Shown here piece by piece: positions 19,394 through 61,613 of a DNA stretch of 64,000 nt. Each line of letters opens with the position of its first letter. The first letter of the stretch is position 1. The translations under genes were made by a program, and so were the position numbers. The notes beneath the pieces are model-generated. The model was not told where the DNA came from, ran no database searches, and was given only the letters and a program-made list of their open reading frames with translations. This DNA is from Dimorphilus gyrociliatus (Eukaryota; Animalia; Annelida): contig CAJFCJ010000012.1 of NCBI GenBank assembly GCA_904063045.1, forward strand, positions 2,771,576 through 2,835,575, written 5' to 3'.

Positions 19394-22300
19394 CTATTTA
19401 GAAATTAAAGATCGCTTTTGAAGTATTTTTCTAACAAAATTTCCAAAATCTTCAATATCTTCATAAATACATGCAATAGAAGAGCTCTTCAATTTCTCTA
19501 TTGATACAAAATGTTCCCTGGTTATTGTCTATAATGGAAAAGATCATTAGTTAAATTGTATTTTCTTTGTGAGAGATTAATTTTGACAAAAATGAAAAAT
19601 TCATACATCATACACAACAGTTTTCAAGTCAAGTTTCTGATCCAGGCATAATGAATGACTGTGAACATGTTCCAATGCTTTTGTTACAGCTTTTATGATA
19701 AGTAAATATTTTAAGTTTTTAAACATGTTGCTATTAATTATGATTTCTTCAATAACACGATTTCTTTTGATATGAAAAATATGATTTTGATCTGCTCCAT
19801 TAATGTAATCCAAGACTATTTTTTGAAACAGTGAAAATTAAGATTTAATTTGAGAAATATTCTTTTTAATAATTACAGTTAGCTTCTATCTTAGATATCT
19901 CTAGTTCAACTCTCAATTGCCTTAAAAAGTAGACAAAAAAAGACACTTCCGGTTAAGATGGAAGACTATTAAATAGATAGAATAATATATTACACTTTTT
20001 TTTCCCTTCTCCTCTTGGCATGAACGTAACTCTTTGAGATCTGACTTATTATATAAACACTTGGATTGACCAGAGAATTTAGTGGTAAGAAGAGGCCAAT
20101 TAAAAAACTGTAGGCTCTATCTTTCAAATTCAATTTCAAGAATATTGATAGAAAACCTTGAAAAAGTAGTATTTAGAGAATTTATATAAATGGTATTGTT
20201 GAATTGTCTAACTTAATATTGAAAATGGGATGGAACATAAAATATTCGTCACTATAATTACAATAACTGTGTTTGAAAGTTTCGTATTTGAAGAAAATCT
20301 CATATGCTTCAGTCTAGTACGCGACTGTTTGACATAGATGTATATTTTAATATAACAAAATATTAGAATAATATTGAAAATTAGAAAGGCAACTCCAAAT
20401 GTTAAAAAGGAGTAAATCCACCCTTCCTTGCCAATGTTAAGAATGTTTATATTCAAACAGATTCTAGTTTTTGAATGAAAATTCTACTTTGAAAGAAGAA
20501 AGTAGTAATGAGTAGTTTAAAAATGAATATTCATACATTATACAAAATACTGGGTAAACTTGATATTAATGCTGTTAGGGTAACTAATGCTGTTATAACT
20601 ATGAATTTCCTCTCAAAAAGCTTGATGGAAATGCCATTGTTTAAAACTATTATAGTCTTTTCAACAGTCATCAATAGTAAACTGCCATTAGAGAGAAAGA
20701 AGCCAAACAGAACGATATTTCCCAAAAGTGTGCATGTAAAACTAAATCTCCACTTTTCGTCAAAGTTTAGATAATCGTTACCAAAATATAAATCTGCTAT
20801 TAAAATGATTGTTATGTATACTGATGTAAGCAAATCTCCAATGATATGAGTAGTCTGAAAAGAGATGGTTCCTTTCTCTTTAGTTAGAATTACGAAAATG
20901 ATAAAATTGGCTGCAGTTCCATACAATCCGTATAACGAAAATATTATTTCCATCAATTTTGAATTCAAGAGATTTGAACAGGTTTGAAAGGCAACATTTG
21001 TAGGTGTACATACAATTTTTGGATTAACATATTTCCAAAGCCAACAACAAATTATAAGATACATACTGTGTAATTTTTCAACTTTTCTCAACGATTTTAT
21101 TACTAAATTCATCCCTCTCAAACTTAAAATTGTTCTATTTAAGTGAATTTCTTTAATGCTTTTAAGTGAATTAAAGAATTCTCTCCCAATTGATATTAAT
21201 TTACAATTTGTCATTTTAAATAACACCAATCTATTCAAATTGACAACGTGTTTAAATTCAAGTTTTACTACTTTGGTGTAAGATATATCCAGAATTTTCA
21301 AAGAATAGAAATTGAAATCTCCTAAAAAATTAATATCATTCAAAGGATTGAATGATAAATTCAGATAGATTAGAATATTCCTTCTTAAACGTCCAGTAAG
21401 ATTTTGTAGACTCGCATTGTTTATTATAACATTAATTAAATTTGGATGCTTTGCCAAGTTAAATTCAAAAATTGGATAATCCTTGATTAGAATTGAAGTT
21501 AAAAATGAGGAAAGATTTTGATGGTTTATTCTAAATTTTCCAATTAATGAGAGTTTTTTTAAGGGAGATTGAATATTTATTTCTGTTATTGAATTGTTTA
21601 CATTGGCATTTTGCCAACAAGACATTTGGTATGAATAATTCATAATACAATAATGATTCAATTCATTTAATTTATAACATTGTAATTCATCGCTTCCCAT
21701 CAAACAGTCAACAATACCATTACAAACTTTTTGAAGAAGTATAAACATAGTAGAGTTTTTACATTTAAAAAAACCTTTCGGTTTGAAACTTTCTGTTTTA
21801 TAATTAAATTTTTTAAATGAGAAATTTTCTATTTATTTAAATTTTCACCTTCATCACAAAAATATTCATCATCGCCTTTGAAACAATGTTTTATACCGTC
21901 GCAAACTTGTTCAATTGAAATGCATACTTCTTCACATTGACAAAGCAATTCTCCAGCTTTACATTTTTTGTTTTTGCAGTTTCTAATTGCGTTAAATGGA
22001 TGTTGTACTTTTGATCTTAAATTTCCAGTTGAATCGTATTTAATGTTACATAAGTAATTTGTGAATTGATGACAGATTTTTTTCAGTGCTTTTGAATTAT
22101 TGTTTCTACGGCAACGCATTATATCTTCATCATCTCCCGAGTCGCAATCTGTCTTGAAATCGCATTGGGCATAATCGTAAATTATTTTCTTGTCACAAAC
22201 GAACAGGTTATTGTCTAAGTAAAGTTCAATTAATCAATTATCTAACTCTATTCTTTAAATTAGCAGCAACGGGATTACTAATTGTAAAACGGAGAGATAG

Positions 22301-25300
22301 ATACCTAGATCATTACTAATTTGCATAATATACTCGTAATCTTCGTCACTGCCATCTATGCAATGTTCTTCGCCGTCTGAAAAGTGTTCTTTCAATATGC
22401 ACTGCCCATTTTTGCAATTGCTTTTAGTTGTAAAGAAAAATTAGCATGTCTTAATTAGGTTTCAATATTTCAAAAAGTTAAAGCTATAGACCTAAAATTT
22501 TCTCCTTCGCATATTATTCTTTCTTTAAAATGATAAAAATAACTCAATTAAATGTTAATTAATAAGAAAACGCCTTTGAAAATTATGATTTTGATCTTTT
22601 GATAAAACTGTGGGCCTATCTAATCTAAAAAGTTAACACAATTACTACAACATTCCCCAATTGGTGAGAATCTATTTTCAGGCGTTTTCTTTCTCTATTT
22701 TTTTAAATTAGGCAAATTAACCGCAATAGTCTTCGTCAGATCCGTCTTTGCAGTCTTTAACATAATTACAAACTTGTGAATAATGAACTCTTTCCAATGA
22801 ATTAAAACATACAAAAGTATCATTTTCATTAATGTTACAGTTATTTTCATCTTCTTTTGAAGTACAATCGAAAATTCCGTCACATATATAGTTAATTGAT
22901 ATGCAGAATTGATCTATTTTGCATAAAAAACAACCAGCAGGACAGGTAACCACATCTTCTATTGGTAAATAAAAGTTGTTTATCTGTTGATGGACGATTT
23001 CTGAAAAGGTGGGAATATTAGAAATATTATTAATGTTTATATATGTGGTTGGGAGAAAATAGCCCAGTAGGTAAGAAAAGTTTAGGGTACGATTTTGGCC
23101 ATCTCTAGACTTTGGAACATCTTAATTTTAATATTTTCCAATTGGTGTAGGGCTAAGCTACGGATTAGGAAGCATAAAGTGGAAAGAATCTTGTTGATTT
23201 GTGAGTTAGGATTAGGGTAAAACACCAAAAAATTGGCCGTTTTCTCCAATACCCGTTTATAAAGTGGTACTTGGGAGTTTATGACAAACGTAATGACTAG
23301 TTTTCATATTACAATCTTTTGATTTAAAGTTGGCTTTTGATAATTTATAATAACTTTTGGGAGGAATTGCTGAAAACGACCGCATTTTTGAATTATTTTA
23401 GGAAAAGGTTTTTCAATTAGACACGTGTAAAACTAAGGAATTGAAAATAAGTTCGAAAACATGTGGTCGTTTTCAACAACATTGTATTATTTCTATAGTC
23501 AAAGAGTAACAGCTTTTAATATGCCAGAATTTGTTTAGTGCTCTCCTCTTTGCAGTTGGGTAACCGTAATAAACCTCAATATAATGTGATAGACTAACAC
23601 AATCCTGAAAGAAAATATAAACATTAGATTGATTTACTGTTGGCGAAAGATTTTTCATTTTGCCAGGAAAGGTTTGAAATTCTCAGTATGTTGATTTGGA
23701 AATAGCAATTCTTTAATAAAATTATCAGCAGTTACTTCAATACTCTTGGTTTTCCTGCCTGATTTCTTGTAAAATTCTAATAATAAAAAGCAAAAGAATA
23801 TAGTAATATACTTCCAGTGAGTGCTATCTGTCTTATTACTATTATAAAATGAAATAGAGACATCATAGCTCCTCACTATTTTATTCATTGCAGCGGCAAT
23901 TAATAAAATAACAAATGATCTACTACGAGTTGGAAATTCACTTAAAGTTAGGTTTTTTTCATGGCATATTTCTGCAGTTTCTTCAATTGAGTATCTTATT
24001 GGTTCAGCATATACGTAATAGCAGATTTCGTAAATTGATATGGAATTTTCGTCTTTTTTGCAATCGCTTCCTAAAAAAACAAATCAGTTGGAAAAGAAAA
24101 AAGAAACAGAGTTGATTTTTCACACTTTCTTTGCCTTTTGAACATTTCAAGTAGAATAAAACATGCCTATGATTCTCTCTGAAAAAATATGAATATTAAA
24201 ACAATAAATTATTAACACTCTGTATACAAATCACAACGTTTTTGTTAACGGTATCACTTTACATTGCCGTAAATGTGAACTATTGCATTTCATTGAACTG
24301 AGTACTATTGTATTAGTTAGGAATATTTGTATTTCAGGCGAATTTTGTAAAGGATTTACTATCGTTCCATAATCGAAATCAAAACTTTTACATATGACTT
24401 GAACTTCATGATATGAAATTGTTTTGAAATGAGTCCACATATTGTTAAATATCGTTTGAAATAATCCAGTATATTCACTGTATTCATGTTTATCCCCTTC
24501 GAGTAAACTCCCCGCCTCCAACATGTGAAGCTGATATTTAGCATCTTTAAGCGCATATATATATATATATATAAATAAATATACAATATGATATTTTCTA
24601 AGGTTTTTATACCTCCCCCTCTTTCATTGCAAATAGGATATGCATAATAGAATTTACCATTTGCAGGCCAAAAAGGTTTATTTAATTTGCATCCTCTAAT
24701 TTCATTTTTTATAATTTTACAATTTTCAATGAATATCTCAAATGACCTCATGTACTCTGATTCACTATGTAGAAAAGTCAATGTAGATGGTATCAAATTC
24801 AACCTTCGACATAATAAATTATTCATAATTATCATGTGATTTTTCTCTAAACTTTTGTAAGAGCTTGCGAATTTAAAAACACATGGAAAGGTAGATTGGA
24901 ATAAACTTTTTGATGAGCAAGTAAAAGCTGTCAAAGGGGATTTTGATTTTCCGTATGTAAAAGTCTTCTCTTTTGATACTTGAAAATCTAAAAAAAGGAA
25001 AATATTGGTATAGTAAGTGAGAAAAAACAATACATTTTCCAAAAGGAATCTAAAACTTGGACGAGTTTATCAAGTTTAGATTAATTGGCTTTGGACTGAA
25101 GAAATTACCGTATATTTCATAATAATGACATTTTATTATGGGAAAATGTTCATTTTTATCAGTTAAATGTCGAATTTGAATGGAAGAAAAATTTTTGTCA
25201 AAGATTGCAAAAGCAGATTTATTTACAAGATGTTCTGGAATTTCAGTAAATTTGAACTTTATTCTTCCACACAGCGAATTGTTGGTATCATTATATTCAT

Positions 25301-25883
25301 CAGAGTATTTTACCAAATAGAATGAGTTATTTGTATGGAACATCATTGAATATAACACGTCAGCTTCACTCTCTAATGTAAGGAAATCTAAACAAGTATA
25401 TACATTTTGATACATTGCACTCTAATCTACAAACAAACTTACAATCGCTGTTCTTTTTGGTGCACATCAATTGTACAAAATTCCTATTTTTTGAAGTAAT
25501 ACTGCAATGATAAAAAAAGCCATGTTGTTGATCTTTTAAACGCAATAAAGATTTTAGAGTAGAGCTTACATTTTGCAACATTTTCCACCTTTTATGCGAA
25601 TGCTTACACCTTTTACATATTTTGTCTCACGGTAAAAACTCACTTCGCCAAAGGCAGAAGAATAATTCAATTTTTGACACAAGCTAGTACCATTCCATAG
25701 AATTTTAGTTTTGTAATCCAGAGGAAGTAGGCTATGGTTATGTAATGTCTTTAGTTTACCTATCACGTGTACATTTGTTTCACTTATTATTTGTAGAGAG
25801 AGTTGTAAAGATGAAGGTAGCTCCCATTTGACAGCATGTAAACAAGACCAGAAAAACACATATTCTATAATCAACATCGACAT
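19394..25883 (-). CDS. GRL101/LGR-type GPCR copy 2; multi-exon
   Basis: Signal peptide MSMLIIEYVFFWSCLHA at 25883; SRCR-like 25600-25850 and 24231..24524; LDLa motifs at 22953-21840; ORF 20531..21748 LDLa+LRR+TM1-4; 20208..20456 TM5-6; LPLNSLVNPSVY at 20100-20050; tail exons 19920-19877, 19815-19607, 19528-19394. Confidence 0.85.
23044..23254 (-). mobile_element. MITE of the telomere-repeat/9-bp-TSD family
   Basis: Ends ttgggagaaaatagcc ... ggccgttttctccaataccc; internal gttaggattagggtaaaa; flanks GTTTATATA / GTTTATAAA (8/9). Confidence 0.72.
23367..23479. mobile_element. Short inverted-repeat element, related to the MITE family
   Basis: TTGCTGAAAACGACCGCAT pairs with the reverse complement of ATGTGGTCGTTTTCAACAA (17/19); no clear TSD. 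Confidence 0.55.
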
Positions 25884-26316
25884 ACTGAATGAATTGAATT
25901 TTTCTAAATAATCATTATCAGTTTCATCTGGTAGAATTGTCTTTTGAAGCAGAACGAAATGCATCCGGTCATATTTTATTACACACATCATCAGATAAAT
26001 TTTAATTAACTTTCAATTGATTCATACACTTTTATTGCTTTATATATTTTTGATTTTCATTATTTCCAATAAATTTTTAGCATCCTCACATAAAATATCA
26101 GATCTATAATAATAATACAATTTTCTTTCCAATGCCTTCTCTGGAACAAAGCTATCATTTCTTTTAAATAGTATTGAAATACAAGACAATTCTTCCTTTT
26201 TCTTATTTGTTATCAGCTTTTTTTGAATTGAAGCTATTGTATATTTAGAGGCTATAACAACAGTTTGAGTCATTCTTTCTCTTCAATTGATTATTATGAT
26301 GAAACATCAACAAAAC

Positions 26317-31566: not shown

Positions 31567-32460
31567 TTATGTTGAAGATGCTACTCTATTCTTTTTGAAT
31601 AGTTGAAAAAATGAAAGTTTAATTGAAGAATTACCAATAATCGTTATTATTGGATTAAATACAGCTTGAGAAATGATTATGATATCTGATGATCTGACGA
31701 TTTTAAATGATAAACTTGTTGGTTTTCGATAATATAAAAAATATGTTAAAGAATATAACATCCAAACAGAAGACATTAAAATTAATTGTAGTAAAGTTGC
31801 TTTAGAAGACTTTGAAATATTCTTACCTTTCTTTGTCTGTTCTTGAATATGAATTGTGTGTTTTTTAGCCAATTTCAAAACTTTTAAATGAAGAATTAAA
31901 GCTCCAAAAATATTTGGCAGAAAGATACATTGATAAATAAAAAAATATTCATTTTCATACACCATAGATCCTTGGCAGATTCCACCTTTTCTATAGCCAA
32001 ACAATGGAATATATGATGGAAAGAGACACAAGATAAATGTAAGGAGAACGATAAGGATAATAATAAAATATGATTTACAATGAGTAAAATATCTATCATA
32101 ATGAAAAGGATATTTAATCATAATATATCTATAAATAAAACAAAATAACAAGAATATTTGAGATTCAACATATAAAATAGCTTTTAATAAATAAAATACA
32201 ACACAAAAAAATGGCATAACCATTTCAAAATTTATGAATAATAATAAATTCGTTTCTGCAACATTCCAGATTAACGTAAACAAGTCTGCAACAGTTATAG
32301 CTGGAATAAATATTATTACTGTTTTCGTAATATTTCCATCTTTCAAAATTAAAAATAGTACCAGACTATTTAATATAGTTCCAAAACTGAACAGACAGTA
32401 ATAGATTGTTGCTAAAACTAGTTCAAAATTTTCATTTTCAAACAAAGTGGTATTATTCAT
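31567..32460 (-). CDS. Intronless rhodopsin-like (class A) orphan GPCR, 297 aa
   Basis: Seven hydrophobic segments; GTILNSLV, ITVADL, FIYRY (DRY position), GGIC, VFNPIIT. Confidence 0.9.
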   Translation of the reverse strand: MNNTTLFENENFELVLATIYYCLFSFGTILNSLVLFLILKDGNITKTVIIFIPAITVADLFTLIWNVAETNLLLFINFEMVMPFFCVVFYLLKAILYVESQIFLLFCFIYRYIMIKYPFHYDRYFTHCKSYFIIILIVLLTFILCLFPSYIPLFGYRKGGICQGSMVYENEYFFIYQCIFLPNIFGALILHLKVLKLAKKHTIHIQEQTKKGKNISKSSKATLLQLILMSSVWMLYSLTYFLYYRKPTSLSFKIVRSSDIIIISQAVFNPIITIIGNSSIKLSFFQLFKKNRVASST

Positions 32461-38389: not shown

Positions 38390-39430
38390 TTAAATTTGTT
38401 TGTCCTTGACATAATTGTTAAAGATTAGTTTACATGTTAAAATATTTATGGAAATGAAGAGTTTTCTTTTTAAACAAGGAAAGATGTAAACATATATAAG
38501 ACTATTGAAAAAGCTGTTTGAAGATGCCAACCAAAATAGAATGAATTTTAAAGTAGGAAACTTTGTCTTGAAATTTGAAAAAAACATTGTTAGAATTAAA
38601 AATGTGCTAAATGGTATCCATAGGATATAGAAAGAGCAAGATGTCAAAATAACAAGTCTAATAACCCTTAAATTTCTCTTTCCTACAGTATTTCTTCCTG
38701 TTGACAATCTCTTCTTCAATAAACTCTGTCTTTTTAGACATAAAACAATTTTGAATGATGAGTAGAGTATTATTCCTGATGCAAAAACTGGTCCAGCTGC
38801 AACATTAATAATTGTATGTAGGTTTAAATCTATTGGCTGACAACAGATCAGTTCACTTTCAAGAAAAGTATACTGTTCCAATCCAAGACTTTTTATTAGA
38901 GGTAAAGAGCTAAAGGTATAAAAGAACAACCAGAAAAAGCAAACTGCAAATTTAACTCTTTTGTAGGTAATAATGTTTTTATATCTGAGAAAATTAACAA
39001 GTTTAGTAAATAAATAAAGCAAATTGAATTTTGAAAATACCATACTTGAAACAATTTACCTGTTTGGATTTGTTACTGCAATGTAACGGTCAACTGTTGT
39101 TAGAGCTATTATCCATAGAGATATCATAGCACTTGAGGTGAATATCACCCCAAAAATTTCACAGTATACATATCCATACGTAAATTTACCAAGAATTGAT
39201 GTCACAAATGATGTTGGTATAAAACAAATATTAAATATACAATCAACTATTGACATATTTATTAGAAGAACTTTTGATGTTGGTGGTATTTGTTTGATGT
39301 TTGAAAGGAACATCAATGCAGATAATGTTGATAAAATTGCCAAAAATACTGGAATTCCAATTATAATTGACCTTTCCGGATTTAAAATAGGGTGTTGAAG
39401 AGTGAAATTGAACAATTTATCATCGTCCAT
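38390..39430 (-). CDS. Two-exon rhodopsin-like GPCR
   Basis: ORF 39056..39430 ends TTVDRYIAVTNPN; the intron AG|GTAAAT...TTCTCAG|A rejoins RYKNIITYKRVK; later ILWIPF and NSFFNSLIY. Confidence 0.88.
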
Positions 39431-40971: not shown

Positions 40972-43900
40972 TTATTTTGACAAATCTTTGAATCTAACTG
41001 CTGCATTTTGTTGGATTTTCTTTTTAATAAAATTACCCAAAGCATGCAAGTCATTTTCCTTGGCTAACCCAATTGTAGAAATCATATTACTCATATCGAG
41101 TATCTGTACTTTCACTACCATCTTGCTTTTCTGGATAAATGAATGAAAGAAGAGCTAGTGGCTTGAACAGTTAAGAAGAATCAATGTTTTTTAAACCTTG
41201 ACTAATATTTCATTGAATAATAAATGTCCATTAAACGTATAAGCATTGCAATGAATCTGGTTGAGAATATATGTTGTATGTAGAGTCACATGATATATAT
41301 TGATTATTGTCAAAGTCTCCAAATGGTATAAATGATTTGCAATAGTTTCTTTACTAGAGATCCTGGTAAGAATCTCTTTTATAACATTATTAATCATAGT
41401 TAAATCTAAGAAATGTTCTTTTTGTTTTTTTTTTTAATTGATTAACAAAACAATCATACTAAACCTTTTAATTTCAAATCTCTTTCAATGTTTACAATCA
41501 TTTGTTGTCTTGAAAGGAAGAGAGACAATAACATTTATATAAGAAATTAGAATACTAATTTCTTTTTACCTTTTCAACTGTAATTCCTTATTTCTTTTAT
41601 CAATGAGAATTTTTAGTTCAACATATGAATAGATTAATGGGTTAACAATTGCTCTTAATGGCATTAAAACAATAACAATGAAAGGGAAAATAGCATTATT
41701 AACTGCAGTTCTGCCAGATGCTGATATAAATCCTTGAGTTTGTGTGTGAGAGAGAGAGAGAGAGAGTGAGAAATTACAGTGATGAGTTGATTTCTTGACT
41801 CTTTTTACTTACCTAAAATAGAGATTGGGAGCCAGAATGAAATGTTTAGTACCGCAATTATTGTACTTTTTTTCAAAGCTTGCAATTTATTTATTTGGGA
41901 ATTTTTTTTTAAAGCATTTCGTCTTAATGATTTGACAATAAGAAGATAAAGGATTGCAACAAAGACACTTGATAAAAATGTTAAAATTCCATATAGAAAG
42001 AAGGAAATAAACCATCCTTCGTATTTTTCGTTAGTTAAATGTAATGAAAAGCAAATTGGAGATCTTGAATTGAAATTCTTTTTATGAGTGAAAAAGAAGA
42101 AGAATTAGAGAGAGAGAGAAAAAGAAGTATTTCAATTTACTTTGAAGAAAACAAGTGTACTGGCTAATAATAAAATTATTATAAAATTCACAATAATATT
42201 GAAAATTTGGTATGGAAAATCTCTTTTCCATAAATAAACAATCGACAAATATCGATCTACAGTAATAAACGCAATAGAAAGTGATGACCCTAAACAGGAA
42301 TATCCGGCAATTACTCCAGATATTAGACACGGAATACTTTTCCTCCATACTATATCATTATCTTCAAAATTGCCTCTATAAATTCCATCTACAGTACCAA
42401 TTACCAAAAGGTAAAAACTGAATAATAAATCAGAAAATGCTAAGTTTATATAAAATATATGAATTGATTTTGTATAATTGATAATTTTTAAAATGATACT
42501 TAAAATATTTGTAATTAAGATAATAACAATGAAAAACCAGATTATAATTTGCATAAATTTTGAAGGAATTAAATCTGAACAGGTGTTAAAACTTTCATCT
42601 AATTTTGTCTTTGATAGACATTTTTGTAATTTTTTGCAATATTTCTGAGCTAGACAACAAATTTGAAAATTTTCAGTAAATATAATTTCAATATTTTTTA
42701 AATCTTTGACAAAAGAGAAATATTCTAGAAATGGTAATTTTGAATTTGTGAAATCAATTTCAAATAAATTATCTAATCCTTTGAAAGAAAATTCTTGTAA
42801 TTCAATAATTTTTGAACTAATTAATGAAAGATATTCAAGTGATTTTAAATTTTTAAATGATAAATTTTCAATAGATTTAAAAGTGTTGTATGAAAGATCT
42901 AAAACTTTTAATGATGGAATGAGAAGAATATTTGAATTTAAATATTTTAAAAAGTTTCTTTTCAATATTAAAACTTGTAATTTTTTCATATTTGAAAAAT
43001 AATTTGAATTATTAGAAAACAATAATTCAGTTGAAGATAAATCTAATTTAATTAAATTTGGAAATTTTTTATATTCAAACATTGATTGGATAGTTTTTGA
43101 AAATGAAATATTCAAAAAATTAATATTCAATTCATTCAAATTTCTGAAATTTTTTAATAGATTTCTTGAATATAGTATTGTCAGATATTTTACAATTATT
43201 GATGAATTTCCTTGAATTTCTATACTACTTTTGGTATTATTAATAAAATTGCAATAACTGTGAAATCTTGTTTGGCAACTGCAAAATTCAGGACATTGGA
43301 ATTGTTTATTGCAGTAAAGTTCATCTGTTCCATTTAAACAGTCAATAATACCATTACAAACTTTACTGTTGTTTAAGAATGTTGAATCTTCAATACATTT
43401 GAAATAGCCAATTGCTTTAAAATTCTCTGAAAATGGGAAAAATATGCAAGTCTTTCAGATTATAACTGTAAAATACCGCAGTTTTCTTCATCATCACTAT
43501 TTGGACAGTGTGCTATGCCGTCGCAGACCTTTTTCAATGGTATACAATAGTAGGAAAAGGAACACCGAAATGATCCTTCAATACACAACATTGATTGACA
43601 ATTTGATAAATCGAAATATGGAAATTGCGGTTTTGTTATCAATTTTCCCAAACTATTGTACTTTAGATGGCATTTTGTTGTTGTAATATCATTTGAAGGA
43701 CCATTGTTTCTCCAATTCAACATTTGGCAGCCACTGTCTATAGAACAAAAATACCATTCTATTATTTAAAATCTGTAGACAAATTTTTCATTCCAAAAAT
43801 CTACCCGAATTGTATGACAACTTTTCACGAAATTTTTTCAAACATTCACTATGGCTTTCATCTTTGCCATCTTTACAATCAATTCTATTGTCACATACAT

Positions 43901-46700
43901 TTCCAATATTTATGCATTCATTGGAACAATAGAATTGAGAAGAATTGCATTCCTCTTTTAGGAAAGAAGTTGGATAGTTAGTCTTACATTCAATCTTTCC
44001 TGTTTATATTACCCGATTTACATATTTCATCTGATCCGTCTACACAGTGTTTCTCTCCATCGCATTTTAAAGAAGCTTTTATACATTCGCCACTTATACA
44101 TCTAAAATATTCAAATATTCTAAACAATTATAAAGCATCAATCAAAATTTTTAAAATTTTACTGTATCTGTCCAGTTTTACAGTTGCCATATTCTGCAAA
44201 AAAGAAAAATCCTCTTTTTGATGTTTTTTTTCAACGTGTTCATTGATATAATCATGTTTTAGTTTTACCACAATTTTCTTCATCATAATTATTTGAACAA
44301 TGATTTATATGATCGCAAACGAATTTTAATTGAATTTTTTCATTGCTTGAACAGTAGAAATATTGAAAAGAATTATCGCAATGTTTCTCATCCTCTCCAG
44401 ATGGACAATTCAAAATTCCATCACATTGAAAAATAGGATTTATGCATATAATATCTTCTTTACAAAGATACATAGGTTCTAAACAAGAAAATTCTCTATA
44501 AACTGGTGAAAAAAAATTTTCAATATCAAATTCATTTCTATCATTAGAAATATCTATATTTAAAAAACAAAAAAAAGAGGCAAAGACATTTTTATTATCT
44601 TCAATTCCATGAATATTTGCTCTTCTTACTCAGAAATGATTGGCAGATTGCATATTTATATAACTTAAAAGAACAATCAACTTTTGAAAATTCATCATAT
44701 GACAAAGAATTACATTTTCCAAATTCTTTAGAATTCTTTTCAGCACCTCCATAGTTTTCGAAACACATATTTTTGCTACTAGTCCTCTTATGATCAGGAA
44801 TATAATAAAATCTTCCAAAGGATTTGTCATAGGTAATTTCTAAAATATCTTTCATAATGAAGAACTGTCTTGAAATTGGTACAGAAACTTCCAAAGGAAC
44901 ATTTCCGGAGAGAAATATTTTTCGATTTCCATTAATCAACACCCTTTCAGATGTTTCTAAAAATGAAGAGAAAGACAGAGAGAGTTTTTATGGAAATTGA
45001 AGAAAAAATCTTTACAAAACCAAATGGAACTTTTTCAGGAATATATTCATCATCTTTCAATGCTTCAGAATTGATTTTATGAACCAAATTCATTAGGAAA
45101 ACACTGTCATCCATTGTTGAAAAAGATAATAAGTTTGCCCCAATATCTTTGCATTTTTCTTTCATCTCTTCCAAAGACACTTTTCCTTTCTCATTGTTGA
45201 TAATATAATAGCATTTACCTTTAAAAATGAAGGCTTCTTTGTTAGGACAACCTGTGATTTATTTTCACCAAAAATTATCTCTATGAGGTGAACAGAGCAG
45301 GACAGAGTGAGAAAAAGAGAGGAAGGAAGCACCTACTAAATGTCTTAATATTTGAACAACTGAGATAAGCATATGGTAAAGCAGCTAGCTTTGTAAAGAA
45401 GAATTTCTTTTTCATATTTGAATATCCATTTCTACAGCCTCTCACATTGTTAACAAATTGACAATCAACTATAAAAGGAGTCGTATGTTTTAAATATTTG
45501 GTCATCAAATATTTTACAGTTCCATACATAAATCCAAAATAATTACAAAACATCTATTTCACACCCAAAATAGGTTTATATTGAGACAAGATTGAAATTG
45601 AAATACTTTTGAATTAGATTATTGAGAAAATGTTTAAAAATTACTTTAACAACTCTCTGAGTAAAACCCCAAGTAAAAACGTATTCACCACTAGAACCAA
45701 ATTTTAAAATTCCTTCTGCAAAATCTATTCCAGTAGTATTATAATAGAAATCTATTTCACCTTGAAGAAAATAATTGTTTTTTCTCTCTAATTATAATCA
45801 TAAAGTAGTTTTAATTGATTTTCACAAAAAAATTGACATTTAATTGATGTTACTGTAGTAAGTTTTTTCATCTTTTATACAATAAACATTAATACAAAAG
45901 AAATCTGTCTCGTATTCAATTCTATCTGGTTTATAGATAAAACCATTGTTCTCTTGATGATAGTACAAAATTCCATTAAAATTTATTGAATGACCTCCTC
46001 TTGAACAAGACACTAAGTACATCTTGTACAAATTGAAATCTTTATAAACGCAACGATTTTTTACCACGCTCTTCAATTTTTCGAAATAATCTGTTTATTA
46101 AAAATGGTGTGTTGTTTTTGTTATTGTTAATATTACATTATTATCAAAAGAAGAGAAACACACCTTCATTTGACACTTTTGGATAGAGGAGAGGCATAGG
46201 ACCAAAACTTTCACTATGAGGTAACATTCTGAAATATTTACCAAAATTTTCATCAATGTCCAATTTAAGATCTGTTCATTTCAAAAAGTGTCAAGAATGA
46301 TGATTAATTTATAAAAACAGACTCAAATTTACCAAAGAAATAATCAGAATATACAGAAATTCTAGTACAATGAATATTTGTTAAATTTTCAATACTAACT
46401 TTTCCAGTGCTTGTTATTAAATAGGCAAAATTTGAAAAAGAGACATTTTTAAATAATTCCATTACTAATAGAAATTTTATTTTCATTTTTCTAAGATCAT
46501 TATCATAAAAATTACAATAATCTTTATTTTTAGGGCAATTCCACATAAATCTCTTCTTTTTGAAACACAAATGAAAAGATTGTTTCTTATGTCTGATGTA
46601 ACCAATGAATTTTCTATGGCCAAAATTTGCTTGATAAGATACATAAGAATCTGTTCAATAGTAATGGTATAAAACATTGATAGTAAGGTTAAGGTCATCT
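40972..46700 (-). CDS. GRL101/LGR-type GPCR copy 3; multi-exon, 5' end uncertain
   Basis: SRCR-like 45281..45553; CTL-like 44601..45180; LDLa motifs at 44473-43300; ORF 42132..43139 LRR+TM1-4 with TVDRY; [13 protein letters not shown] at about 41660-41620; tail exons 41508-41465, 41405-41197, 41130-40972. Confidence 0.85.
41743..41768. repeat. (TG)n(AG)n compound microsatellite in an intron
   Basis: tgtgtgtgagagagagagagagagag read directly. Confidence 0.8.
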
Positions 46701-48143
46701 ATGTAAAAACAAACAAACACGGAATATTTATACTATAGCATCTCAAACAATAAACAAAATTATCATTTTTCCCAGCATTTTCTTTTGAACAGTTGTTGAA
46801 CAATCTAAAAATTTTTGAATGTTTAGGAAATTAGAGAAATCTTCAAAATTCTACTCACAAATACAATTTTCATTAATGCATTTCATATCAATTTTACTAA
46901 TATCTATAAATAAAAAATATGAATCAGTAAAACTGTTTTCTATAACAAAAGAAAAGATTCTTTTTTACCATTTTGTTTTTTATTACATGTAAATAAATTT
47001 GAATTTAAGTCATCAAAACCCAATTCAACACAAATTTTGGTATGAAAATTTTTATAATTTATAAAGTGATTTTTATTATAAATAAGATTAAATACTTCTT
47101 CAGAGTTTTTCATTTTAATTTTTATATCTAAATAACCTTCAATAAAACTATACCTTGAAGATAATCCACTAATATTGAATGTAACATTTCTATTACCAAA
47201 GAGTTGAAAACTGCTGTTGTTTTTTTTTGTGATAAAAAAAAATAACTTAGAAAAGTTGGATTATTCTTTTTCCTTTATATTTACCTTGACCTACATTTAT
47301 CAGCTTTAATTGCAGAGTCTATTAAACTTTTAATTATTAGTATAGTATTTATTATTCTTATAGTTTTTAAAAACATGGTACTGATTTTAAAATCAATTTT
47401 TTTGTTTATTTATATTAAAATTAACATTTCAATTGATCTTTGTAAAAAAGAAATTTAATACCAATTTTAAAAATATCTACGTTAAATCTAAAAGGTCACA
47501 TGATCATTAGAAGAATCAAATATTGAGTATTTCTTTTTCATTATTAAAATAAATTAATTTAATTTAGTTGTTTGTATTTTTTATATCTTTTATTAACAAT
47601 TAATAAAAAGGAGTATGAGAAAATACATTCTATTTTTTCGCATTTTAATTCTTCTCTAATGAGATGTTTTCTCCTAATTCTAATTAATATAGGTTTCTTT
47701 TAAATATTTTTAGTTCTATAAAAACTGAAAAGCCATTTTGACAAATAATTTATATATCTTAAACTAAAAATATATTATCCACAAAACAATGTTATTAGAC
47801 TGTAACAGACGCCACTATCGATTTAGCAAAAGAACATTGACACTTGTCAAAAAACTTTTACATAACATTGCATGTGAAAAAACAGTCTTTAATATTGAAG
47901 AATAGTCGATAAATCTGAAATCTGAAATGATTACCTTTCAAGTAAACATTTTCAATAATTTTCGATGTTTTAACAATATTTCCTTGTATAAAAAGGAACC
48001 GCTCTTTAAACAAAATCTGCATTGCTCACGTTGCAACTACAACATCTTTGTACTATTACAAGTTCACAGAAACACAACAATATAATAATAAATCAAATTG
48101 GGGAAAAGGTCAAGGTTAAAAGGTTATTTTTTCATATTTTAGG

Positions 48144-50125
48144 TTAAATATTTGAAAAGAAAAGTTGACAAGATAACTGTTGATTAAAATCAAAAAATTT
48201 GTCTGTTAAAATAAAAAGGACAGTCTTATTCAATGTAAAATCTCCAATCCTTTTACAATTCAAAGTCAAATATGTCTTTATGTTTATTTTATTAAATGAA
48301 CAATTTAAACCAATTTCTGGATTTTGTTTGGAATTTTTAGAAAAATTTCCATCACTGAATTCATTTAAATTTAATTGTTTTTGAATGAAAGTTAATGGAT
48401 TAATTATCTTAATCATTATTTCTTCATCAGATTCAAACTTTAACTGAAAGAATGAATTCTTTGATTTTTTGGGTACAGTAACATACAAGTACTCATTGAA
48501 CTTGTTATAGACAATTGACATTCTACTATTAGTATTTTTTATCAAAGTAATTTTCCTTCCCCCTAAAGAGAAGATGAAATGTTATGTACAATTTAAAAGC
48601 ACCAAAAGTAATCAAACCTTTGAAATCAACTTTTACATAATTAATAACATTTGGCAATTTATTTTTAAATGTTATATGAGAAATATTAAGCGGAAGTGGA
48701 AAAGTTGATTCAATTATACCCAATAAAATCACATTGTTATCTTCAATTAAACCAAATTTCACTTGTGTGCATGTAAATTCAAGCCAGAAAAGTTTCCATT
48801 CTGAACAATTTAATAATTGTTGTAAATGATTAATTATAAGGCTTTTTCTTTCTGGTTTTAGTAATGTCAAAAAAGACTGCCCTATTGTATTGTGAGTTAT
48901 TGAGCAGATAATTTCATCATTGCATTTAAAACTGACTACGAGAGAATTGCACAAGCTGAATAAACTACCTTTCACCTGATATTTAAACTCCTTTAGATTG
49001 TTTAAATCCTTGTTGGACAGATGATAAATGACATCATTAGTTGTTTGAATGTTAAAAATATTACTGTCAACATCAGCTTTTGTATAAACATCAATCATTG
49101 AAATAGAAAATTTTTGAACATTGTAAACTTGTAAGATTTTCAAATGAAACCAAAGTTCATTGAATGTACTTGAATAATCTTTGCAATTTCTTTGTATTCC
49201 TTGTATTAAATCAAATTCTTGGCTAGAGGCAAAGCTCCATTTTACCAACATGCTTTTTATGATTATGTCCTCATTAAATCTTTTCAAGATATTTTTTAAT
49301 TGAAAATTACAAGATAAATTCTTAAAAAAAGAAGATATTTTTACCTTTCTGTTACACAATATTGATTTGGTTTAGCTGAATAGGCAAAAGTAATATTTAT
49401 ATATTCTCCAATGCAACCACTAATACATTCTGGATTCCAAAAACTATGGAAACTTGGTTCAAGGGCATTATCACAAATGCCACTAGATGCAGAACATTTT
49501 GCCCCAATATCGCCTTTTGAAATGCTTGTATAAATTATATCATCATTTCCATCATCAGCTTGAAAAAATATTTAAATATTTACATTGTTTTGATAAGGAA
49601 AATTTGTATTATTAAATGTTTACTTGTGTAAGAAAATACCAAAATTGAACTAAATCCTATATGATTCATACCACTGTGTCCTTCAAATGGTTGTAAATGA
49701 ATGTACTCAACAGATTCTCCTTGACCATCTTCCAATAGATAACATGTTTCATAACTATCCAATTTATAAATAAAAGTTGGCCCTCTGCTAAAAGTGACAT
49801 TTAACAGTTCAATTTTATACATTTTCGCTATAATTCTTTGATTTAAACAAAATGAAATAATATTGTATGTTTTAAAAAAATTGACTTTAATCCATTGATG
49901 AGCGCAATCATCGGGTGAACAAAAAGATGCCCAACCACCCATAACCAACTGCTTATCTTCAAGAGCATTTTCACAATTATAAGTAAAACTACCAATATAA
50001 GGATGATGTGATGATTCTTCACAAGTAGCCAAATTATGTCTATAGGCCACATTGAGAAGTTTTGCAAAAGCAGTTACATGGAATGATAAGAAAATAATAA
50101 AAGAAGTTATAAAGTAACTGTTCAT
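48144..50125 (-). CDS. F5/8C + FAMeT-like secreted protein, copy 2
   Basis: ORFs nearly identical to 15988-17969; visible substitutions include HIRF>HIGF, DSSI>DSNI, NITH>NISH, PRKS>PKKS. Confidence 0.7.
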
Positions 50126-52168
50126 TGTAAATTTCTTATTACAAATGTAAATTTCTTAAAATGTTAATTATTAAAAAAGAGAAATTAATTATTTATAATC
50201 CAAACACTTAAAATAATTGATAATAAATAGATAATAAATAATAACCTTTCCAATTTAGATATTCCTTACAAAAGATTCTTATTGTCTTATATTTAAATAT
50301 GTTCAATTATACAATTTATAAATTAATAATATTCTTCTTTTCATTGTAAACTGAAAAACAGTTATTGCTGTTTAAAAGGAAGAACTTGTCAACAAGAGAA
50401 GAAAAAGGCCTGAGACAATAAATAACTATTTTTTATGAATGTTCTTAAACTATATGATCTTGAAAATGTTAAATCTTGAGCTCTCTTTTAATTTAATTTA
50501 AGAATCAACTGTAGTTAAATTTGAATACGACAGTAAGAGAATGAGGTTGGAAACTAATAAGTGCAGTTTCAAGAATGAAAGAACGTTTTAGATTATTTAT
50601 GAATATGTATATTGCAATTAAGTAAGATGAAGTTCAGGTTAGATTTACAAATATTTTTTGTCAAAATTGTAGTCATGGTCTTCTCAAAAGCTAGTAATCA
50701 GCTCCTTATCCTCGGATCTCTTTTAATTTTTTTGGAAGAGATGATACTTGCTTTAATATTATTGTACTATAAATATATATAATATCTATGAAGAGTTACA
50801 TTAACTGGAAGTTTTCAATAACTCTATGGACATTATCAATAAATTTATTCCCTTCACTCTCCTGTAGCTGTCTGTTTGTAGGTTCAAAGTCTACTGGGTT
50901 TCCATTTGAAGATGAGTAAGGGTTACTTTTTTGTGTGACTTGCAAATATCATGAAATTCTAAATTCACTCTTTCCATAAACTTATTACTGGTAAAGAAAG
51001 AAACTACAAAAGATTTTCCCTGAAAATTATTCAGATAAGTCATCTCTTTATTGAAATTTTTACATCTGATAAAAAATATTCAATGGGTTTTGACATGAAT
51101 TTTACAAATGACATTATCTCTCTCATCAAAAGTTATATAGAATTAGAATGGTTATAATTCAAGTTATTTTCCTATTAAATTCTAGTTGTTGTACCTTAAG
51201 TCAACAGACTCTTTGAGTAAAGATCAATGTGTACATATTGGGAGTTTTTTGAGTAAAAAAATTGTTTGATTGTTCTATAATCAAAAAAAAACTTTCCAAA
51301 AAGAATTATAAATTATAATATTAAAAAAAAGCGAAAAATTTGTCATAGTATCTAATATTGATAAACATTAATTATATAAAGTTTGCAAACAACTGACAAT
51401 AATGCATTTGCATTCAAAGTATTAATTCTTTTAATTGGCAATATAATCAGTCATATCAGTGATGTTCTTGAGATCATTTCCTTTTTTCCAGTATTTTAAA
51501 TAGTTAACATTAGTTGCAGGAAAATCTGATAAAGTGATATCAGTGAAGTTTGTTCATGGCGTAAAACTACCAATAGCTGATGGTAATTCTCCAACTATTC
51601 TTTATCATTATAGTCTTCTCTAAATGCAATAATTTTAATAAATTCAGATTACATGTGTGAAAAAGCGCCATCTGTTATTATACTTTAGTAAATGTATTTT
51701 TTCTCAATATCTTGACAAATATTAATTGTTGAGAATATTTTTAGCACACAGGATTATAAATATAAAAGAAGCTTTTATCGAACTCAGATCAAAAAAGTCT
51801 ATATGAGAATATTCCTCCAACTAACAAAAGAGGCTTGTCTGAATCCCTTGATAAGAACATGTAAAATTGTGGCTGTTGATACATATGGAAATAAAAGAAA
51901 TATGACAATATATTTGAATATTTGAATATTATAAGGAAATGACAAGAGACAATTGAAGAGCTGTTATATTTTATATTAACTAAAGAAACAGTTAGGAAAC
52001 AGTTAATGAACACAAATTTCACATACCTCTGTAATATTAGTAATTACTATTTTTAATTCTTGATTGCTTGTCTACCCCTTCAAACTATTGATAATATTGT
52101 TCCACACTTTATATAAAGATAAACAATAGATTGTTAACGGCAAGTGGTCATTATATTTATTATTATAT

Positions 52169-53212: not shown

Positions 53213-55013
53213 TTATGGAGTTTTTTTCTGTTTAAAAAAGTCGTATAGATTACCAGTTAAAAAATCAAGAAATTCAAAAACAGTTAAGAGTGTAGATCCA
53301 AGAACCAAGCCAAATGATCCACCCACATCGGATAATAGAGCGAGCCATGTATAGGCTGGTTTCTCGCTTAGTTGTTCAGAAGTCATTGATGAATAAAAGA
53401 CATTTATTTCTACAAAATCATTTATAAGGAAATGTTTTGAAGTTGAATGATGATTGGATAAATTTAGATAATGTTTGCCAAAAGTACCAAATGATAGCAT
53501 TGTACTATATTCATGAATAGAACATTGATCTTTACAAGAGCATTTTTCCATTTCGTCATGCTTTATAAAATCTATAGTAGAAGCTTTAACGCATAATAAG
53601 TTAAATGGAGCACAGATTAGAGTTGGTTTAGTAGCTATTTTGAGAATGAAAAACTAAAAAAAAAACAGTTCATAAAGTCATTAAAATCATATTTACGTAT
53701 CATTTCAGGGGATATACATTTGCATTTGTCAGCAATATAGTCTGAAAAACATGTCAATTGACATTTACTTTGCCGATAACTACTATCAGCATTGCAGTTT
53801 CCATAGGGAGTACTAAGTAGATTTTTAACTTTTAGTACTGTTGCCGCAAGATAATCTTTTCCAAATGTTACTTTAAATCCTTTTTCAAGCATTTGTGGAA
53901 CATCTTTTGAATCATGAATAAGAACCTAGATATGTGGAGAGTATGATGAAAATTTTCCAATCTATTTTAGTACTCAACTCTATATCCGGCTGACAATGAA
54001 TTAGCAGTAAAATAATTATCAGAACTAATATTAAGGTATAAACTTAATCCATTTGTTGCTCCAGGTGATTTTACTACTAAATTGGTTGTGTCTGTATAAT
54101 TTTTAATATTACTTTTACATTGTTCATGCTTTGCTAAAGAAAGATTAAATTTTTACCAGAATTAAATTGAAAGCATCCACCCATATTAGTTTGAATCAAT
54201 GTAAAATTCTGACTGTTGCAAGGTGTTTGTTTAAATGAACACTGTTTTGAAAAAACACAAATTATTAGATACTTTAAATTAAAAAGTAATTAAGGGATTC
54301 CAACAGAAAATGTCCACTTTTGTTGATATCTTCTATTAGCTTTCAACTTTTTTTTCTAATTTAACGACTACAGTTTGTTTAGATATTTTCAACTTTAAAT
54401 GGACATTTCCTGTTCCCCCTCCTCCTCCACTTTCTCTCTTTTACATAAACAATTGCTTCTTGAGCACTCTGTCCTAAGTTCTTGTATACTTGAGCCCAAT
54501 TCCAATATGAATTATTCTTATAGAATAGATGCTCCTCAGTGAGATTGACAGTATAGTTCTGTCGAGGGTCCGCAGTGAAAAGTGGACCAATGACCTTGTC
54601 AAAATCTTTTAATAAAAGCCTTTTTATTAATTCATATATAAACATTGATAAATTGAAAAAATAAAAAATAAACAACCATTTTCAAATACTTTTGGAGAGA
54701 AGAATTTATTCTCATTGCAGACTGTTACAGTTGGAAATCTCAGTACATTGTTATAAACGTTACTAATTTGAGAAATTCTTTCATATTTCAAGAAATAAGA
54801 GATGCGATCGTGAAGTTGATAGATCATAAACCCAAATCCAATAAATAGAAGAAACGCCCATAAGATCCTCTTGGAAGTGGAATTTTCATGACCAGTAGTA
54901 TACTTTATTCCAATTACACTAACATTTTGAGAGAACGTTTGAAAGCGTTTTATGAAATTTTTTTTTGTTCTCTTCTCTTCAGATTTTAATTTCTGATGCT
55001 GTTGCAGTTCCAT
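53213..55013 (-). CDS. DEG/ENaC (amiloride-sensitive-type) channel subunit; multi-exon
   Basis: TM1 RILWAFLLFIGF; FPTVTVCNEN; YRQSKCQLTC...CKC; TM2 LLSDVGGSFGLVLGSTLLTVFEFLD. Confidence 0.92.
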
Positions 55014-58830: not shown

Positions 58831-61338
58831 TTACTGTATTTTTACTTTAAAATTACATTGTTTTAGCAAAGATTTCACAGGTTCTTCATTAGACCACTTG
58901 ACAAATGCTCGACCCAAAATAACTTTCTTTAAAGTAGATGATGAGGAGAGAAGTCCATTACAAATCACTGGTAATGTTGATACTTTTACACATTGATTTA
59001 AGCTAATATCAACTGTTTCAATTTTGTAAAAAACCTTCAAAGATCTTCCAAAAATTTCCATTGTACTTTCATTCATATTACAATCTTTAAAGTGGATATT
59101 CTTCAAAGAATTTTCCATTTTGGCAAGGCCTTGTAGAATATTTATAATTCCTCTTCCAATATTTCGATTGGAGTTGAAGTTGATTGTTTCAATTGCATGG
59201 AAATCTTTCAAATAATTCCCTATCTTTATACAATCATCTTCAAAAAAGTCACACATTTCAAAATTGATATTCTTAAGAGTAGTTTCTGATGAAGATAATC
59301 CTTCCAGAATGGTTTCCAATTCATTTTTAATATACAAATTACCTTTTAGACTGAAATCCACAATTGCAGAACAATTTCTTAACAATATTCCAATTATTCT
59401 ACATTCTTGTCTACTTAGTTCGCAATTTTCAAAATCAATGACTGTTAAAGTTTTTCTGGATTGAATAAGCCCTTCGCAAATATCTGATAATCCATAGGAC
59501 ATTTTGTTATTAAATGATAAATTGATTGCTTTTATAGTAGAGCAACTTTTCAACCAATTTCCAATCTGTCTACAATTTTCAATATTCAAATCATGATTTT
59601 GAAGGTTGATAGTTTCTAGGCTATTTGATGAATTGATGAGTACTTTATAAATATTAATTAGTTTATTGTCTTCAAAAAGTTGCGATGTTTGTATATCTAT
59701 AATTTCTAATGTTGAGCAAGATTGAAAGAATGTTTGAATCATTTCATATTGTTTTTCATTAACATCGCACCATTGAAAATGAAGTCTTTTCATAGTATTT
59801 GAAGATTGGTGAAGATTTTGAAAAATATATGACAATTCACTGCCTAAAATTTTATTATGGTATAAGTTGAGGGTCTCAAGCTTAGGGCAAGTCATTAACA
59901 ATTTGCCAAGTTTTATCCATGCCTCTCGATTTACTACGTTACAATCCTCCAGATTTAGATACTTTAAACAGTTTGATGAAGAATGAAGTCCTTCGAAAAT
60001 GTATTCTAATCCATTACCAACTCGAGAACCCGTTAAATCAATTGTTTCAATTTTTAAACAGGTTTTCAATGAATTTCCAAGATTTTCCAATTGAGGATAA
60101 CTTAAACTACATTCAGCTAAGCATAAACTTTTTAAACTTTGTGATAAATGAACAAGGCCATCAAAAATAGTCCATATTGATTTTATTTTCTTTTTAGAAT
60201 GTGAAAATATACATTTACTAAGATCAACATCTTCCAAATTAGAACAATTTTTCCATAAATTGTTTAAAATAGAATATATCAATGGACAATAATTAATTGA
60301 TGAAAGTTTAACTTTCTTTAGTGTTTCTGAGGAATGAATAAGTCGATTACAAATATAGCTTAATCCGTCACCTATCTTATAATTCCATTCCAGATGAATT
60401 GCCTCAATTTTTGAACCTTTTAAAAGGCTTTCTATCTCTTTACACTGTTCCATGTTTATATCGCATCCTTTGAAAGAGATTCTTATCACGTGATCAGTTG
60501 ATAATTTTAATTCATTGTCTAAAATACGCAGTTGTTGATCGTCTATTGTTTTGTTTGACATGTCAATTACTTTAGGTGAAAATTTCTCATTTTCACACTC
60601 CATTTTTAAAGCTTTTTCCATTGAAGTTATATCAGAATTTCTTTTAAGAGTACTATCATTGAGATTGGAGTTATTTTTCACTTTATAATCAATATTAATA
60701 CTTTCAATAATGTCTATTTCCAACTGTTTAACATTTGGTAAAAAATCTACTAAATCGCCATTTTCTTTTGCAATATTATAAACAAATTCTTCTCTCTTAT
60801 CATTTATATCTTTAAAATTTCTTCTGATAATTTGAAATTTATCTTTTACCATTTTAATTGCATTATTTTCAAATTCATTAATCTTATTCCAATTTTCATA
60901 CATTTTTTTTATTTCGTCATTGTGAAAATTTTCTAAAATTTCTTTTCTCTTTTCCAATTTCACCATTGAAAAAACATTGCAACTTCTATGATTTTCTTCT
61001 TGGCATAAAATACAGATTTTTTCTACATTATGAGTTGAACAGTAAAATGATGCTTCCTTTTTATGATCTTTACATAAATCCATATGTATTGACTGTTTTC
61101 TAAAAAGATCTTTAACACAATATTTAGGGATCATTTTTATACCATTTTGCTGTAGCAAATAATCTTGCCTACATTCTGGACATTTAATATTACTGTGTTT
61201 AATCTCTAAATTAGTTAAACAAGCAAAACAAAATATGTGCTGACAAGGTAAAATTCTAGGATCATTCCCAAACCAAGATTCTGAGCATATGCCACACACT
61301 ATATCTCTAATACTTACAAAATAACCTTGGGTCGCCAT
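58831..61338 (-). CDS. Intronless RING + B-box-like + coiled-coil + RI-type LRR protein, 835 aa from MATQG
   Basis: CGIC...PCQHIFCFAC...CPEC RING; CKDH...YCSTH...CILC...HRSC B-box-like; charged helical linker; then a long array of about 28-aa LxxLxLxxN/C repeats. ATG at 61338 is preferred over the non-canonical upstream ORF start. Confidence 0.9.
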   Translation of the reverse strand: MATQGYFVSIRDIVCGICSESWFGNDPRILPCQHIFCFACLTNLEIKHSNIKCPECRQDYLLQQNGIKMIPKYCVKDLFRKQSIHMDLCKDHKKEASFYCSTHNVEKICILCQEENHRSCNVFSMVKLEKRKEILENFHNDEIKKMYENWNKINEFENNAIKMVKDKFQIIRRNFKDINDKREEFVYNIAKENGDLVDFLPNVKQLEIDIIESINIDYKVKNNSNLNDSTLKRNSDITSMEKALKMECENEKFSPKVIDMSNKTIDDQQLRILDNELKLSTDHVIRISFKGCDINMEQCKEIESLLKGSKIEAIHLEWNYKIGDGLSYICNRLIHSSETLKKVKLSSINYCPLIYSILNNLWKNCSNLEDVDLSKCIFSHSKKKIKSIWTIFDGLVHLSQSLKSLCLAECSLSYPQLENLGNSLKTCLKIETIDLTGSRVGNGLEYIFEGLHSSSNCLKYLNLEDCNVVNREAWIKLGKLLMTCPKLETLNLYHNKILGSELSYIFQNLHQSSNTMKRLHFQWCDVNEKQYEMIQTFFQSCSTLEIIDIQTSQLFEDNKLINIYKVLINSSNSLETINLQNHDLNIENCRQIGNWLKSCSTIKAINLSFNNKMSYGLSDICEGLIQSRKTLTVIDFENCELSRQECRIIGILLRNCSAIVDFSLKGNLYIKNELETILEGLSSSETTLKNINFEMCDFFEDDCIKIGNYLKDFHAIETINFNSNRNIGRGIINILQGLAKMENSLKNIHFKDCNMNESTMEIFGRSLKVFYKIETVDISLNQCVKVSTLPVICNGLLSSSSTLKKVILGRAFVKWSNEEPVKSLLKQCNFKVKIQ

Positions 61339-61613
61339 TTTCTTTTTGGAATGTTCAAAAAGATATTGATTTTGCATTGATAACAAAGTATAATGTAAAT
61401 AACATAGGCTTAAAAGATCAAAGTCATAATTACTTATGTGATGCACTTCAGTTCAATATAAACCTTGGTATATTTTTATCTTTTAAAATTAACATTTTTT
61501 TATTATCTTAAAAATATTGATTAGTAAATTTAAATGAATTGGACTCTTCTAGACTGTAAATTTCGCCTCCTTATACCAGTCTAGGCTGTAATATAAGTGT
61601 CCACTTTTTCCAA

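Follow-up and report, generated by a model that had tools for sequence, protein, structure and literature searches.

The window, i.e. the whole stretch of 64 000 nucleotides from the Dimorphilus gyrociliatus contig CAJFCJ010000012.1 that was analysed, is AT-rich (GC 23-34%, mostly 25-31%) and carries on its minus strand three genes for receptors with LDLa modules, a leucine-rich repeat (LRR) region and seven transmembrane segments (7TM). Their large exons, situated at about 2986-4344 (copy 1), 20534-21832 (copy 2) and 42135-43454 (copy 3), are 28-31% identical to one another at the protein level, and a protein search with the LRR/TM exon gave no match closer than about 27% identity, the nearest ones being unnamed fragments, and brought up no gene model of this genome. 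Upstream of each copy lie mutually similar ORFs (6034-9667, 24231-25991 and 44601-45553, minus strand) with the motif TGLFQ...YGT[IV] and no match in Pfam; they may encode additional N-terminal parts of the receptors. Two genes for rhodopsin-type GPCRs without ectodomains are located between copies 2 and 3 (31567-32460 and 38390-39430, minus strand; 41 and 51 bits, respectively, against the 7tm_1 profile). The window also contains a 2.5-kb block present twice, at 15793-18244 and 47949-50406, with 96.7% identity. The ORFs of this block (276 and 181-188 amino acids) have no Pfam match, and the duplication is far younger than the adjoining LGR copies, which are only 28-31% identical. Further along, exons of an amiloride-sensitive sodium channel (ASC/DEG/ENaC) are found at 53213-55013 on the minus strand (75 and 60 bits), and 58831-61446, again on the minus strand, is occupied by a single ORF of 871 amino acids with an N-terminal RING finger (Pfam), behind which a long leucine-rich, ribonuclease-inhibitor-like repeat region can be recognized by eye.

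The gene of copy 3 was reconstructed exon by exon, always on the minus strand. The large exon (42141-43426 when its 5′ border is taken from the joint in a transcript-like contig, see below) encodes TM1-4, preceded by the LRR region and a single LDLa module. In Pfam searches it scored 37 bits with LRR_8 and 33.2 bits with 7tm_1, both above the cut-off, and a weak 17 bits with Ldl_recept_a; additional LDLa-like exons lie 5′ of it. The matches to the LDLa, LRR and rhodopsin-type 7TM profiles all fall within this one exon, and the polypeptide combines the three domains of the type-C LGR or GRL101 kind of receptor. The next exon (41813-42077, with AG/GT borders) encodes TM5-TM6 and matches positions 136-221 of the 7tm_1 profile with 24 bits. 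It is followed by an exon for TM7, with its NPLIY motif, and helix 8 (41570-41732, assigned from its translation and borders), which ends in phase 2. Three tail exons complete the gene: exon A (41465-41508, 44 nt, 14 full codons), exon B (41197-41405, 209 nt, 69 codons) and exon C (40972-41130, 159 nt including the stop codon). All three are preceded by AG acceptors, A and B are followed by GT donors, and C closes with TAA. The coordinates of these three exons and their translation, as given in the original prediction, thus proved to be exact, with canonical borders and an open frame. Joining of all the exons gave a frame, counted from the LRR exon, of 707 codons without any internal stop, in which the tail accounts for about 137 residues, cytoplasmic and situated beyond helix 8. 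Without the 44-nt exon A this frame would be lost. Retention of the intron that follows the TM7/helix 8 exon (border 41570/41569) gives AGG TAA, an immediate stop, so that a tail-less isoform of copy 3 is only one splicing decision away.

None of the sequencing runs on record as RNA contained this stretch of copy 3. Contigs identical in sequence to the window were obtained from another run, X2, the library type of which is not on record. A 185-nt contig from this run joins position 41197 to position 41130, i.e. exon B to exon C, and lacks the 66 nt in between (41131-41196), which are bounded by GT and AG on the minus strand. Two further X2 contigs lack introns situated upstream, with joints between 43426 and 43477 and between 43737 and 43805. 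Contigs from which introns have been removed are the pattern expected of cDNA. Another X2 contig, covering 41705-41841, keeps the TM6/TM7 intron, unspliced. For the tail, contig support consists of the exon B/C splice; no spliced contig spans the junctions of exon A. Two other runs, X1 and X3, yielded a second set of contigs that match only 65-73 nt of exon C (window positions 41033-41105, a segment including ILDMS...NDLHALG). These contigs carry a G>A difference at 41075 (changing the minus-strand codon from Thr19 to Ile), are several-fold deeper and diverge abruptly on both sides; there seems to be a near copy of this stretch of exon C elsewhere in the genome, either in a paralogous exon or in a repeat.

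Tails of the same make-up follow the other two receptors. In copy 1 the three exons are 2447-2404, 2338-2130 and 2063-1932 (span 1932-2447), and in copy 2 they are 19920-19877, 19815-19607 and 19528-19394 (span 19394-19920), all on the minus strand. Exons A and B measure 44 and 209 nt in all three copies; exon C is 132 and 135 nt long in copies 1 and 2, respectively, and the exon phases agree between the copies. After exon B, the three copies have an intron in phase 0 (66, 78 and 66 nt long), and an intron of the same phase occurs at the identical position in four loci outside the window (L001, L003, L005 and L007). It had been claimed that a phase-0 intron falls at this point in all three genes; this is correct, and the tails are homologous. 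Pairwise comparison against shuffled sequences showed the tails of copies 1 and 2 to be clearly related (z of 7.6 for exon B and 5.7 for exon C). For copy 3, such a relation was seen only between its exon C and that of copy 2 (z of 5.0); its exon B did not rise above shuffles when compared pairwise with the other window copies.

To find relatives, the three exon B peptides were combined into a profile, which was run against a library of 1.8 billion representative proteins. The profile matched eight short, exon-level ORFs from Logan contigs. It also matched bacterial LysM repeats, which we take to be artefacts of composition or repetition. The upstream context was looked up for six of the eight relatives (P0033 and P0034 were left out). 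Four lie 3′ of an ORF that is read in the same direction, namely P0027 and P0031 (seen in fetched contigs), P0026 (seen in gene calls only) and P0030. For the first three, the upstream ORFs encode LDLa and/or 7tm_1, and P0030 stands behind a long, unclassified ORF that is cut by the end of the contig. The remaining two are P0039, on short contigs without an upstream gene, and P0029, behind an unclassified ORF. The source of P0026 and P0029 is long-read metagenomes of corals from Tara Pacific. At L001:3582-3638 and L003:257-331, no in-frame stop interrupts the B/C intron, and gene callers consequently reported P0027 and P0039 as read-through ORFs. A homologue search with the family alignment returned the known members only, and use of P0008 as a query led to a side family devoid of tail, which was discarded. 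A histidine of exon B (His51 in copy 3) is invariant in the 11 members.

The question is then what this family of tails could derive from. The original prediction was of a kinase-like remnant, and it proposed as a check an HMM of the three tails. The exon B profile found the eight relatives, and it gave no match to kinases above threshold. More generally, no method produced a match to kinases at a curated or conventional threshold. The two exons were profiled separately and the searches were carried out exon by exon. Against Pfam, none of the tail exons of copies 1 to 3 had a match at E≤10. The read-through relative P0027 aligned to positions 170-199 of the Pkinase profile, in the alphaF region, with an E-value of 0.017 and a score of 14.9 bits, where the cut-off is 31.7. 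When the 11-member exon B profile was compared to the PDB, CaMKII was the sole family matched (E of 0.2-1.4), in alphaD/alphaE register, and exon B of copy 1 alone aligned to CaMKII residues 82-134, from beta4/5 to alphaE, with an E-value of 0.85. The three-sequence exon B profile gave eL19 and PAN3 instead (E of about 0.5), neither of which was retained. The exon C profile matched no kinase in the PDB, its only match being to 10 residues of ribosomal protein eS19, and P0027 had no PDB match by phmmer. Exon B of copy 3 gave no usable match in the ESM Atlas, and a read-through profile (A8) added no signal. As a lead only, it can be mentioned that among the neighbours of the L001 tail in ESM features, all those with a family name are fragments of Pkinase (score of 0.89).

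An independent test was made by profile-profile comparison with hhalign. Kinase profiles were made from genes on viral contigs fetched by DNA patterns for HRDLKPENI and HRDIKPxN. Against 19 such kinases, the exon B family aligned with alphaE (template columns 117-134, P of 0.0049) and the exon C family with alphaF (template columns 190-218, P of 0.0079), and the two alignments are collinear. Column-shuffled tail alignments reached the real scores in 0 out of 50 trials for exon B and in 1 out of 50 for exon C, reversed alignments did not reach them, and the result was repeated with a profile of 88 kinases. The hhalign probabilities are only 5-12%, and the matched columns number 18-29 per helix, for two helices only. 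At the level of individual sequences, 10 out of 11 exon B members had their best local match in one region of the kinase HMM, and 3 out of 7 exon C members matched alphaF at p≤0.002. Neither the window nor the receptor loci L001-L008 contain a kinase gene. The alphaE and alphaF elements of a kinase core are thus recognizable in the right order, weakly and at the level of the family only. Judging from these comparisons of sequence, we consider it likely that the tail family is kinase-derived.

One alternative is that this lineage has evolved its own cytoplasmic extension, mostly helical and without kinase ancestry, and that the resemblance results from chance, from the presence of two amphipathic helices and from an AT-biased proteome. 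An AT-biased composition (rich in N, K, I, L and F) does inflate weak matches, and every kinase score was below threshold. Structure prediction also speaks for this possibility: the two AlphaFold models at hand, which are proxies and not the spliced tail (the L001 read-through ORF, with a pLDDT of 58, and exon B of copy 1, with a pLDDT of 73; low to moderate confidence), consist of helices without kinase-like strands or sheet, and Foldseek found no match with either. Moreover, a ribosomal protein is the sole PDB match of the exon C profile, and the three-sequence profile had as its top matches eL19 in the PDB and LysM repeats in the large library. It is less easy to understand, under the same alternative, why two separate exons should match one fold in the right order and register, why both should beat nearly all of their column shuffles and why four methods should converge on kinases and, consistently, on nothing else. 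We therefore regard an origin unconnected with kinases as rather unlikely.

Another possibility concerns copy 3 in particular. Each copy was tested against family HMMs built without it (1000 shuffles). Copy 3 scored 14.8 bits for exon B, a value reached by 0 out of 1000 shuffles, and 6.0 bits for exon C (9 out of 1000). The corresponding scores were 52.1 and 37.2 bits for copy 1, and 44.0 and 28.7 bits for copy 2. Copy 3 is thus a true member of the tail family, and the most eroded one. It has the exon phases, the histidine of exon B and the D..G..KILQK end that characterize the family, the KILQK part being degraded. It could be argued that such a tail, with its constraint relaxed, is in decay and has lost any function of its own. 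The low scores (14.8 and 6.0 bits, compared to 29-52 bits for copies 1 and 2), the fact that exon B is pairwise indistinguishable from shuffles and the degraded KILQK end all go in this direction. On the other hand, about 137 tail codons have remained open in a genome of 27% GC, for which the chance calculated from base composition is about 5×10−6, the lengths and phases of the exons have been kept, and the splice between exons B and C is in use. A tail that is mere debris is, in our opinion, unlikely.

Taken alone, the exons of copy 3 carry no kinase signal: against a kinase HMM, the score was 3.8 bits for exon B, which aligned out of register, and 0.5 bits for exon C. The kinase reading of copy 3 therefore rests on its relatives, and it is through them that its motifs have to be placed. 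Residues 36-55 of exon B (41239-41298, minus strand), with His51, form the alphaE-like helix, since this is where the family profile aligns to kinase alphaE. Residues 57-64, FNGHLLFN (41212-41235, minus strand), would be equivalent to the catalytic loop if the register of the alphaE alignment is extended by hand. In that register F-N-G would take the place of H-R-D, with Gly59 instead of the catalytic aspartate, and Asn64 would fit the asparagine of the loop; N-G is found at the HRD-equivalent place in most relatives too. In exon C, the motif NDLHALG (residues 26-32; 41035-41055, minus strand) had been likened to the DxxxLG of alphaF, and this proposal fares well. It is the best-kept motif of the family, hhalign places it on the D-x-W-S-x-G of kinase alphaF, all three copies in the window have its D27 and G32 (5 out of 7 and 6 out of 7 members, respectively, in the family columns), and in the family it is followed by R-K-I-L-Q-K.

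The same cannot be said of VKVQILDMS (exon C residues 6-14; 41089-41115, minus strand), in which a VKIxDFG had been seen: its aspartate is off register by two residues, the motif is absent from the six other members and no kinase alignment extends over the stretch. At this place a polar or acidic residue follows a strand-like run of hydrophobic residues in all members, a feature compatible with a beta8 remnant and also with much else. That copy 3 keeps a true beta7-beta8-DFG core, with Asp12 of exon C as the descendant of the DFG aspartate, could be defended on the grounds that, if residues are counted from the start of the exon without gaps, D or N stands at position 12 in 4 out of 6 members, behind a hydrophobic strand (by eye), that the spacing from the asparagine to this aspartate is 17 residues, a distance in the range that kinases, for example CaMKII, display, and that the pattern occurs in only 0.5% of shuffles, but this is quite improbable given the two-residue shift, the fact that MAFFT aligns Asp12 with no conserved column, the lack of any kinase alignment reaching the stretch and the definition of the pattern after the sequence had been seen. 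What can be described is a hydrophobic strand and then an acidic residue; a DFG is unsupported.

A very short activation segment had been anticipated as well, and here the spacing agrees: from the histidine of the alphaE-like helix to the aspartate of the alphaF-like motif there are 45 residues, compared to 66 in the kinase consensus, and there is no APE, so that a normal activation segment cannot fit. On the N-terminal side, only about 35 residues separate helix 8 from the alphaD/alphaE-like part, and the tail has no Gly-rich loop, no VAIK lysine and no alphaC glutamate. Its scores do not attain the Pfam gathering values of PF00069 or PF07714. In sum, the original reading is supported for the homology of the tails, the shared intron, the alphaF-like motif and the short segment, and is not supported for the DFG remnant.

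The best explanation for the whole, to which we assign a probability of about 0.62, is that copy 3 encodes an intact LDLa-LRR-7TM receptor, of the GRL101 or type-C LGR kind as judged from its domain order, and is apparently transcribed, and that the LGR tail is the relic of a kinase domain, most eroded in copy 3. The tail of these receptors is real, and it is probably what remains of a dead kinase. It would correspond to the stripped middle of a protein-kinase domain, comprising beta4/5, alphaD, alphaE, the catalytic loop, beta7-8 and the start of alphaF, and would be devoid of the ATP-binding N-lobe, of a normal activation segment and of anything past alphaF. Since N-lobe, catalytic aspartate and activation segment are all missing, it cannot bind ATP or transfer phosphate. 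It could act instead as a folded or partly folded docking or scaffold piece located after helix 8, near the face of the receptor that contacts G proteins and arrestins; such a docking role is the most likely one by analogy with receptor pseudokinase domains. The best-kept element is the alphaF-like end, D-I-x-x-F-G-x-I-x-R-K-I-L-Q-K-K/R, a basic surface that would be the most constrained part. In copy 3, the alphaE-like helix with its invariant histidine, the F-N-G loop and the D-x-x-x-L-G motif have survived.

Copy 3 illustrates how far a module can decay while its exons, their phases and the frame are kept, and it also illustrates how unreliable the spotting of a 'DFG-like' motif is in a decayed copy. 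If the kinase ancestry is true, these would be the first LGR-type GPCRs known with kinase-derived sequence, and the tail would offer a handle on the signalling of the orphan receptors of the GRL101 type. A more speculative extension, which we think has a rather small chance of being right, is that the GRL101 kind of LDLa-LRR GPCR goes back to genuine fusions of a 7TM receptor with a kinase, the tail being the surviving core of the kinase and still a signalling scaffold. Such fusions would then be an ancestral design of animal receptors and not a curiosity of protists and sponges.

Several known systems can be compared to this one. The combination of several LDLa modules, LRR and a rhodopsin-type 7TM is the published architecture of GRL101 from Lymnaea stagnalis and of the arthropod 'LGR5' (PMC8286064). 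The order LDLa, LRR, 7TM in these type-C-like LGRs is that of the window copies, the comparison being one of domain architecture. The papers on GRL101-type receptors that we searched do not mention a kinase-like tail. Among kinases, the CaMKII kinase domain (PDB 5fg8 and 2v7o) gives the register of the exon B profile, from beta4/5 to alphaE. The E-values are only 0.2-0.85, however, and the catalytic loop is not kept in the tail; a claim of origin from the CAMK group cannot be made. With regard to receptors, inactive kinase-derived modules serve for regulation or docking in membrane guanylyl cyclases and in the JH2 domain of JAK. These pseudokinases retain both lobes of the fold in full and in many cases bind ATP, whereas the tail is without N-lobe and without alphaG-alphaI. 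A parallel in layout is provided by the 7TM receptors with a C-terminal kinase, namely the GPCR-bigrams of oomycetes and amoebozoans, the GPCR-TKL/K of choanoflagellates and the GPCR-TK of choanoflagellates and sponges (PMC12716839, PMC6033456), which in the papers searched are confined to protists and sponges. As in the window copies, a 7TM receptor is followed by C-terminal sequence related to kinases. The difference is that a GPCR-TK or GPCR-TKL/K has a complete kinase domain behind the 7TM, detectable with Pfam, whereas copy 3 has a tail of about 137 residues in which Pfam finds no kinase; the fusions belong to unrelated 7TM families and contain a whole domain, while here about 125-137 residues of a dead one would be carried by an LGR.
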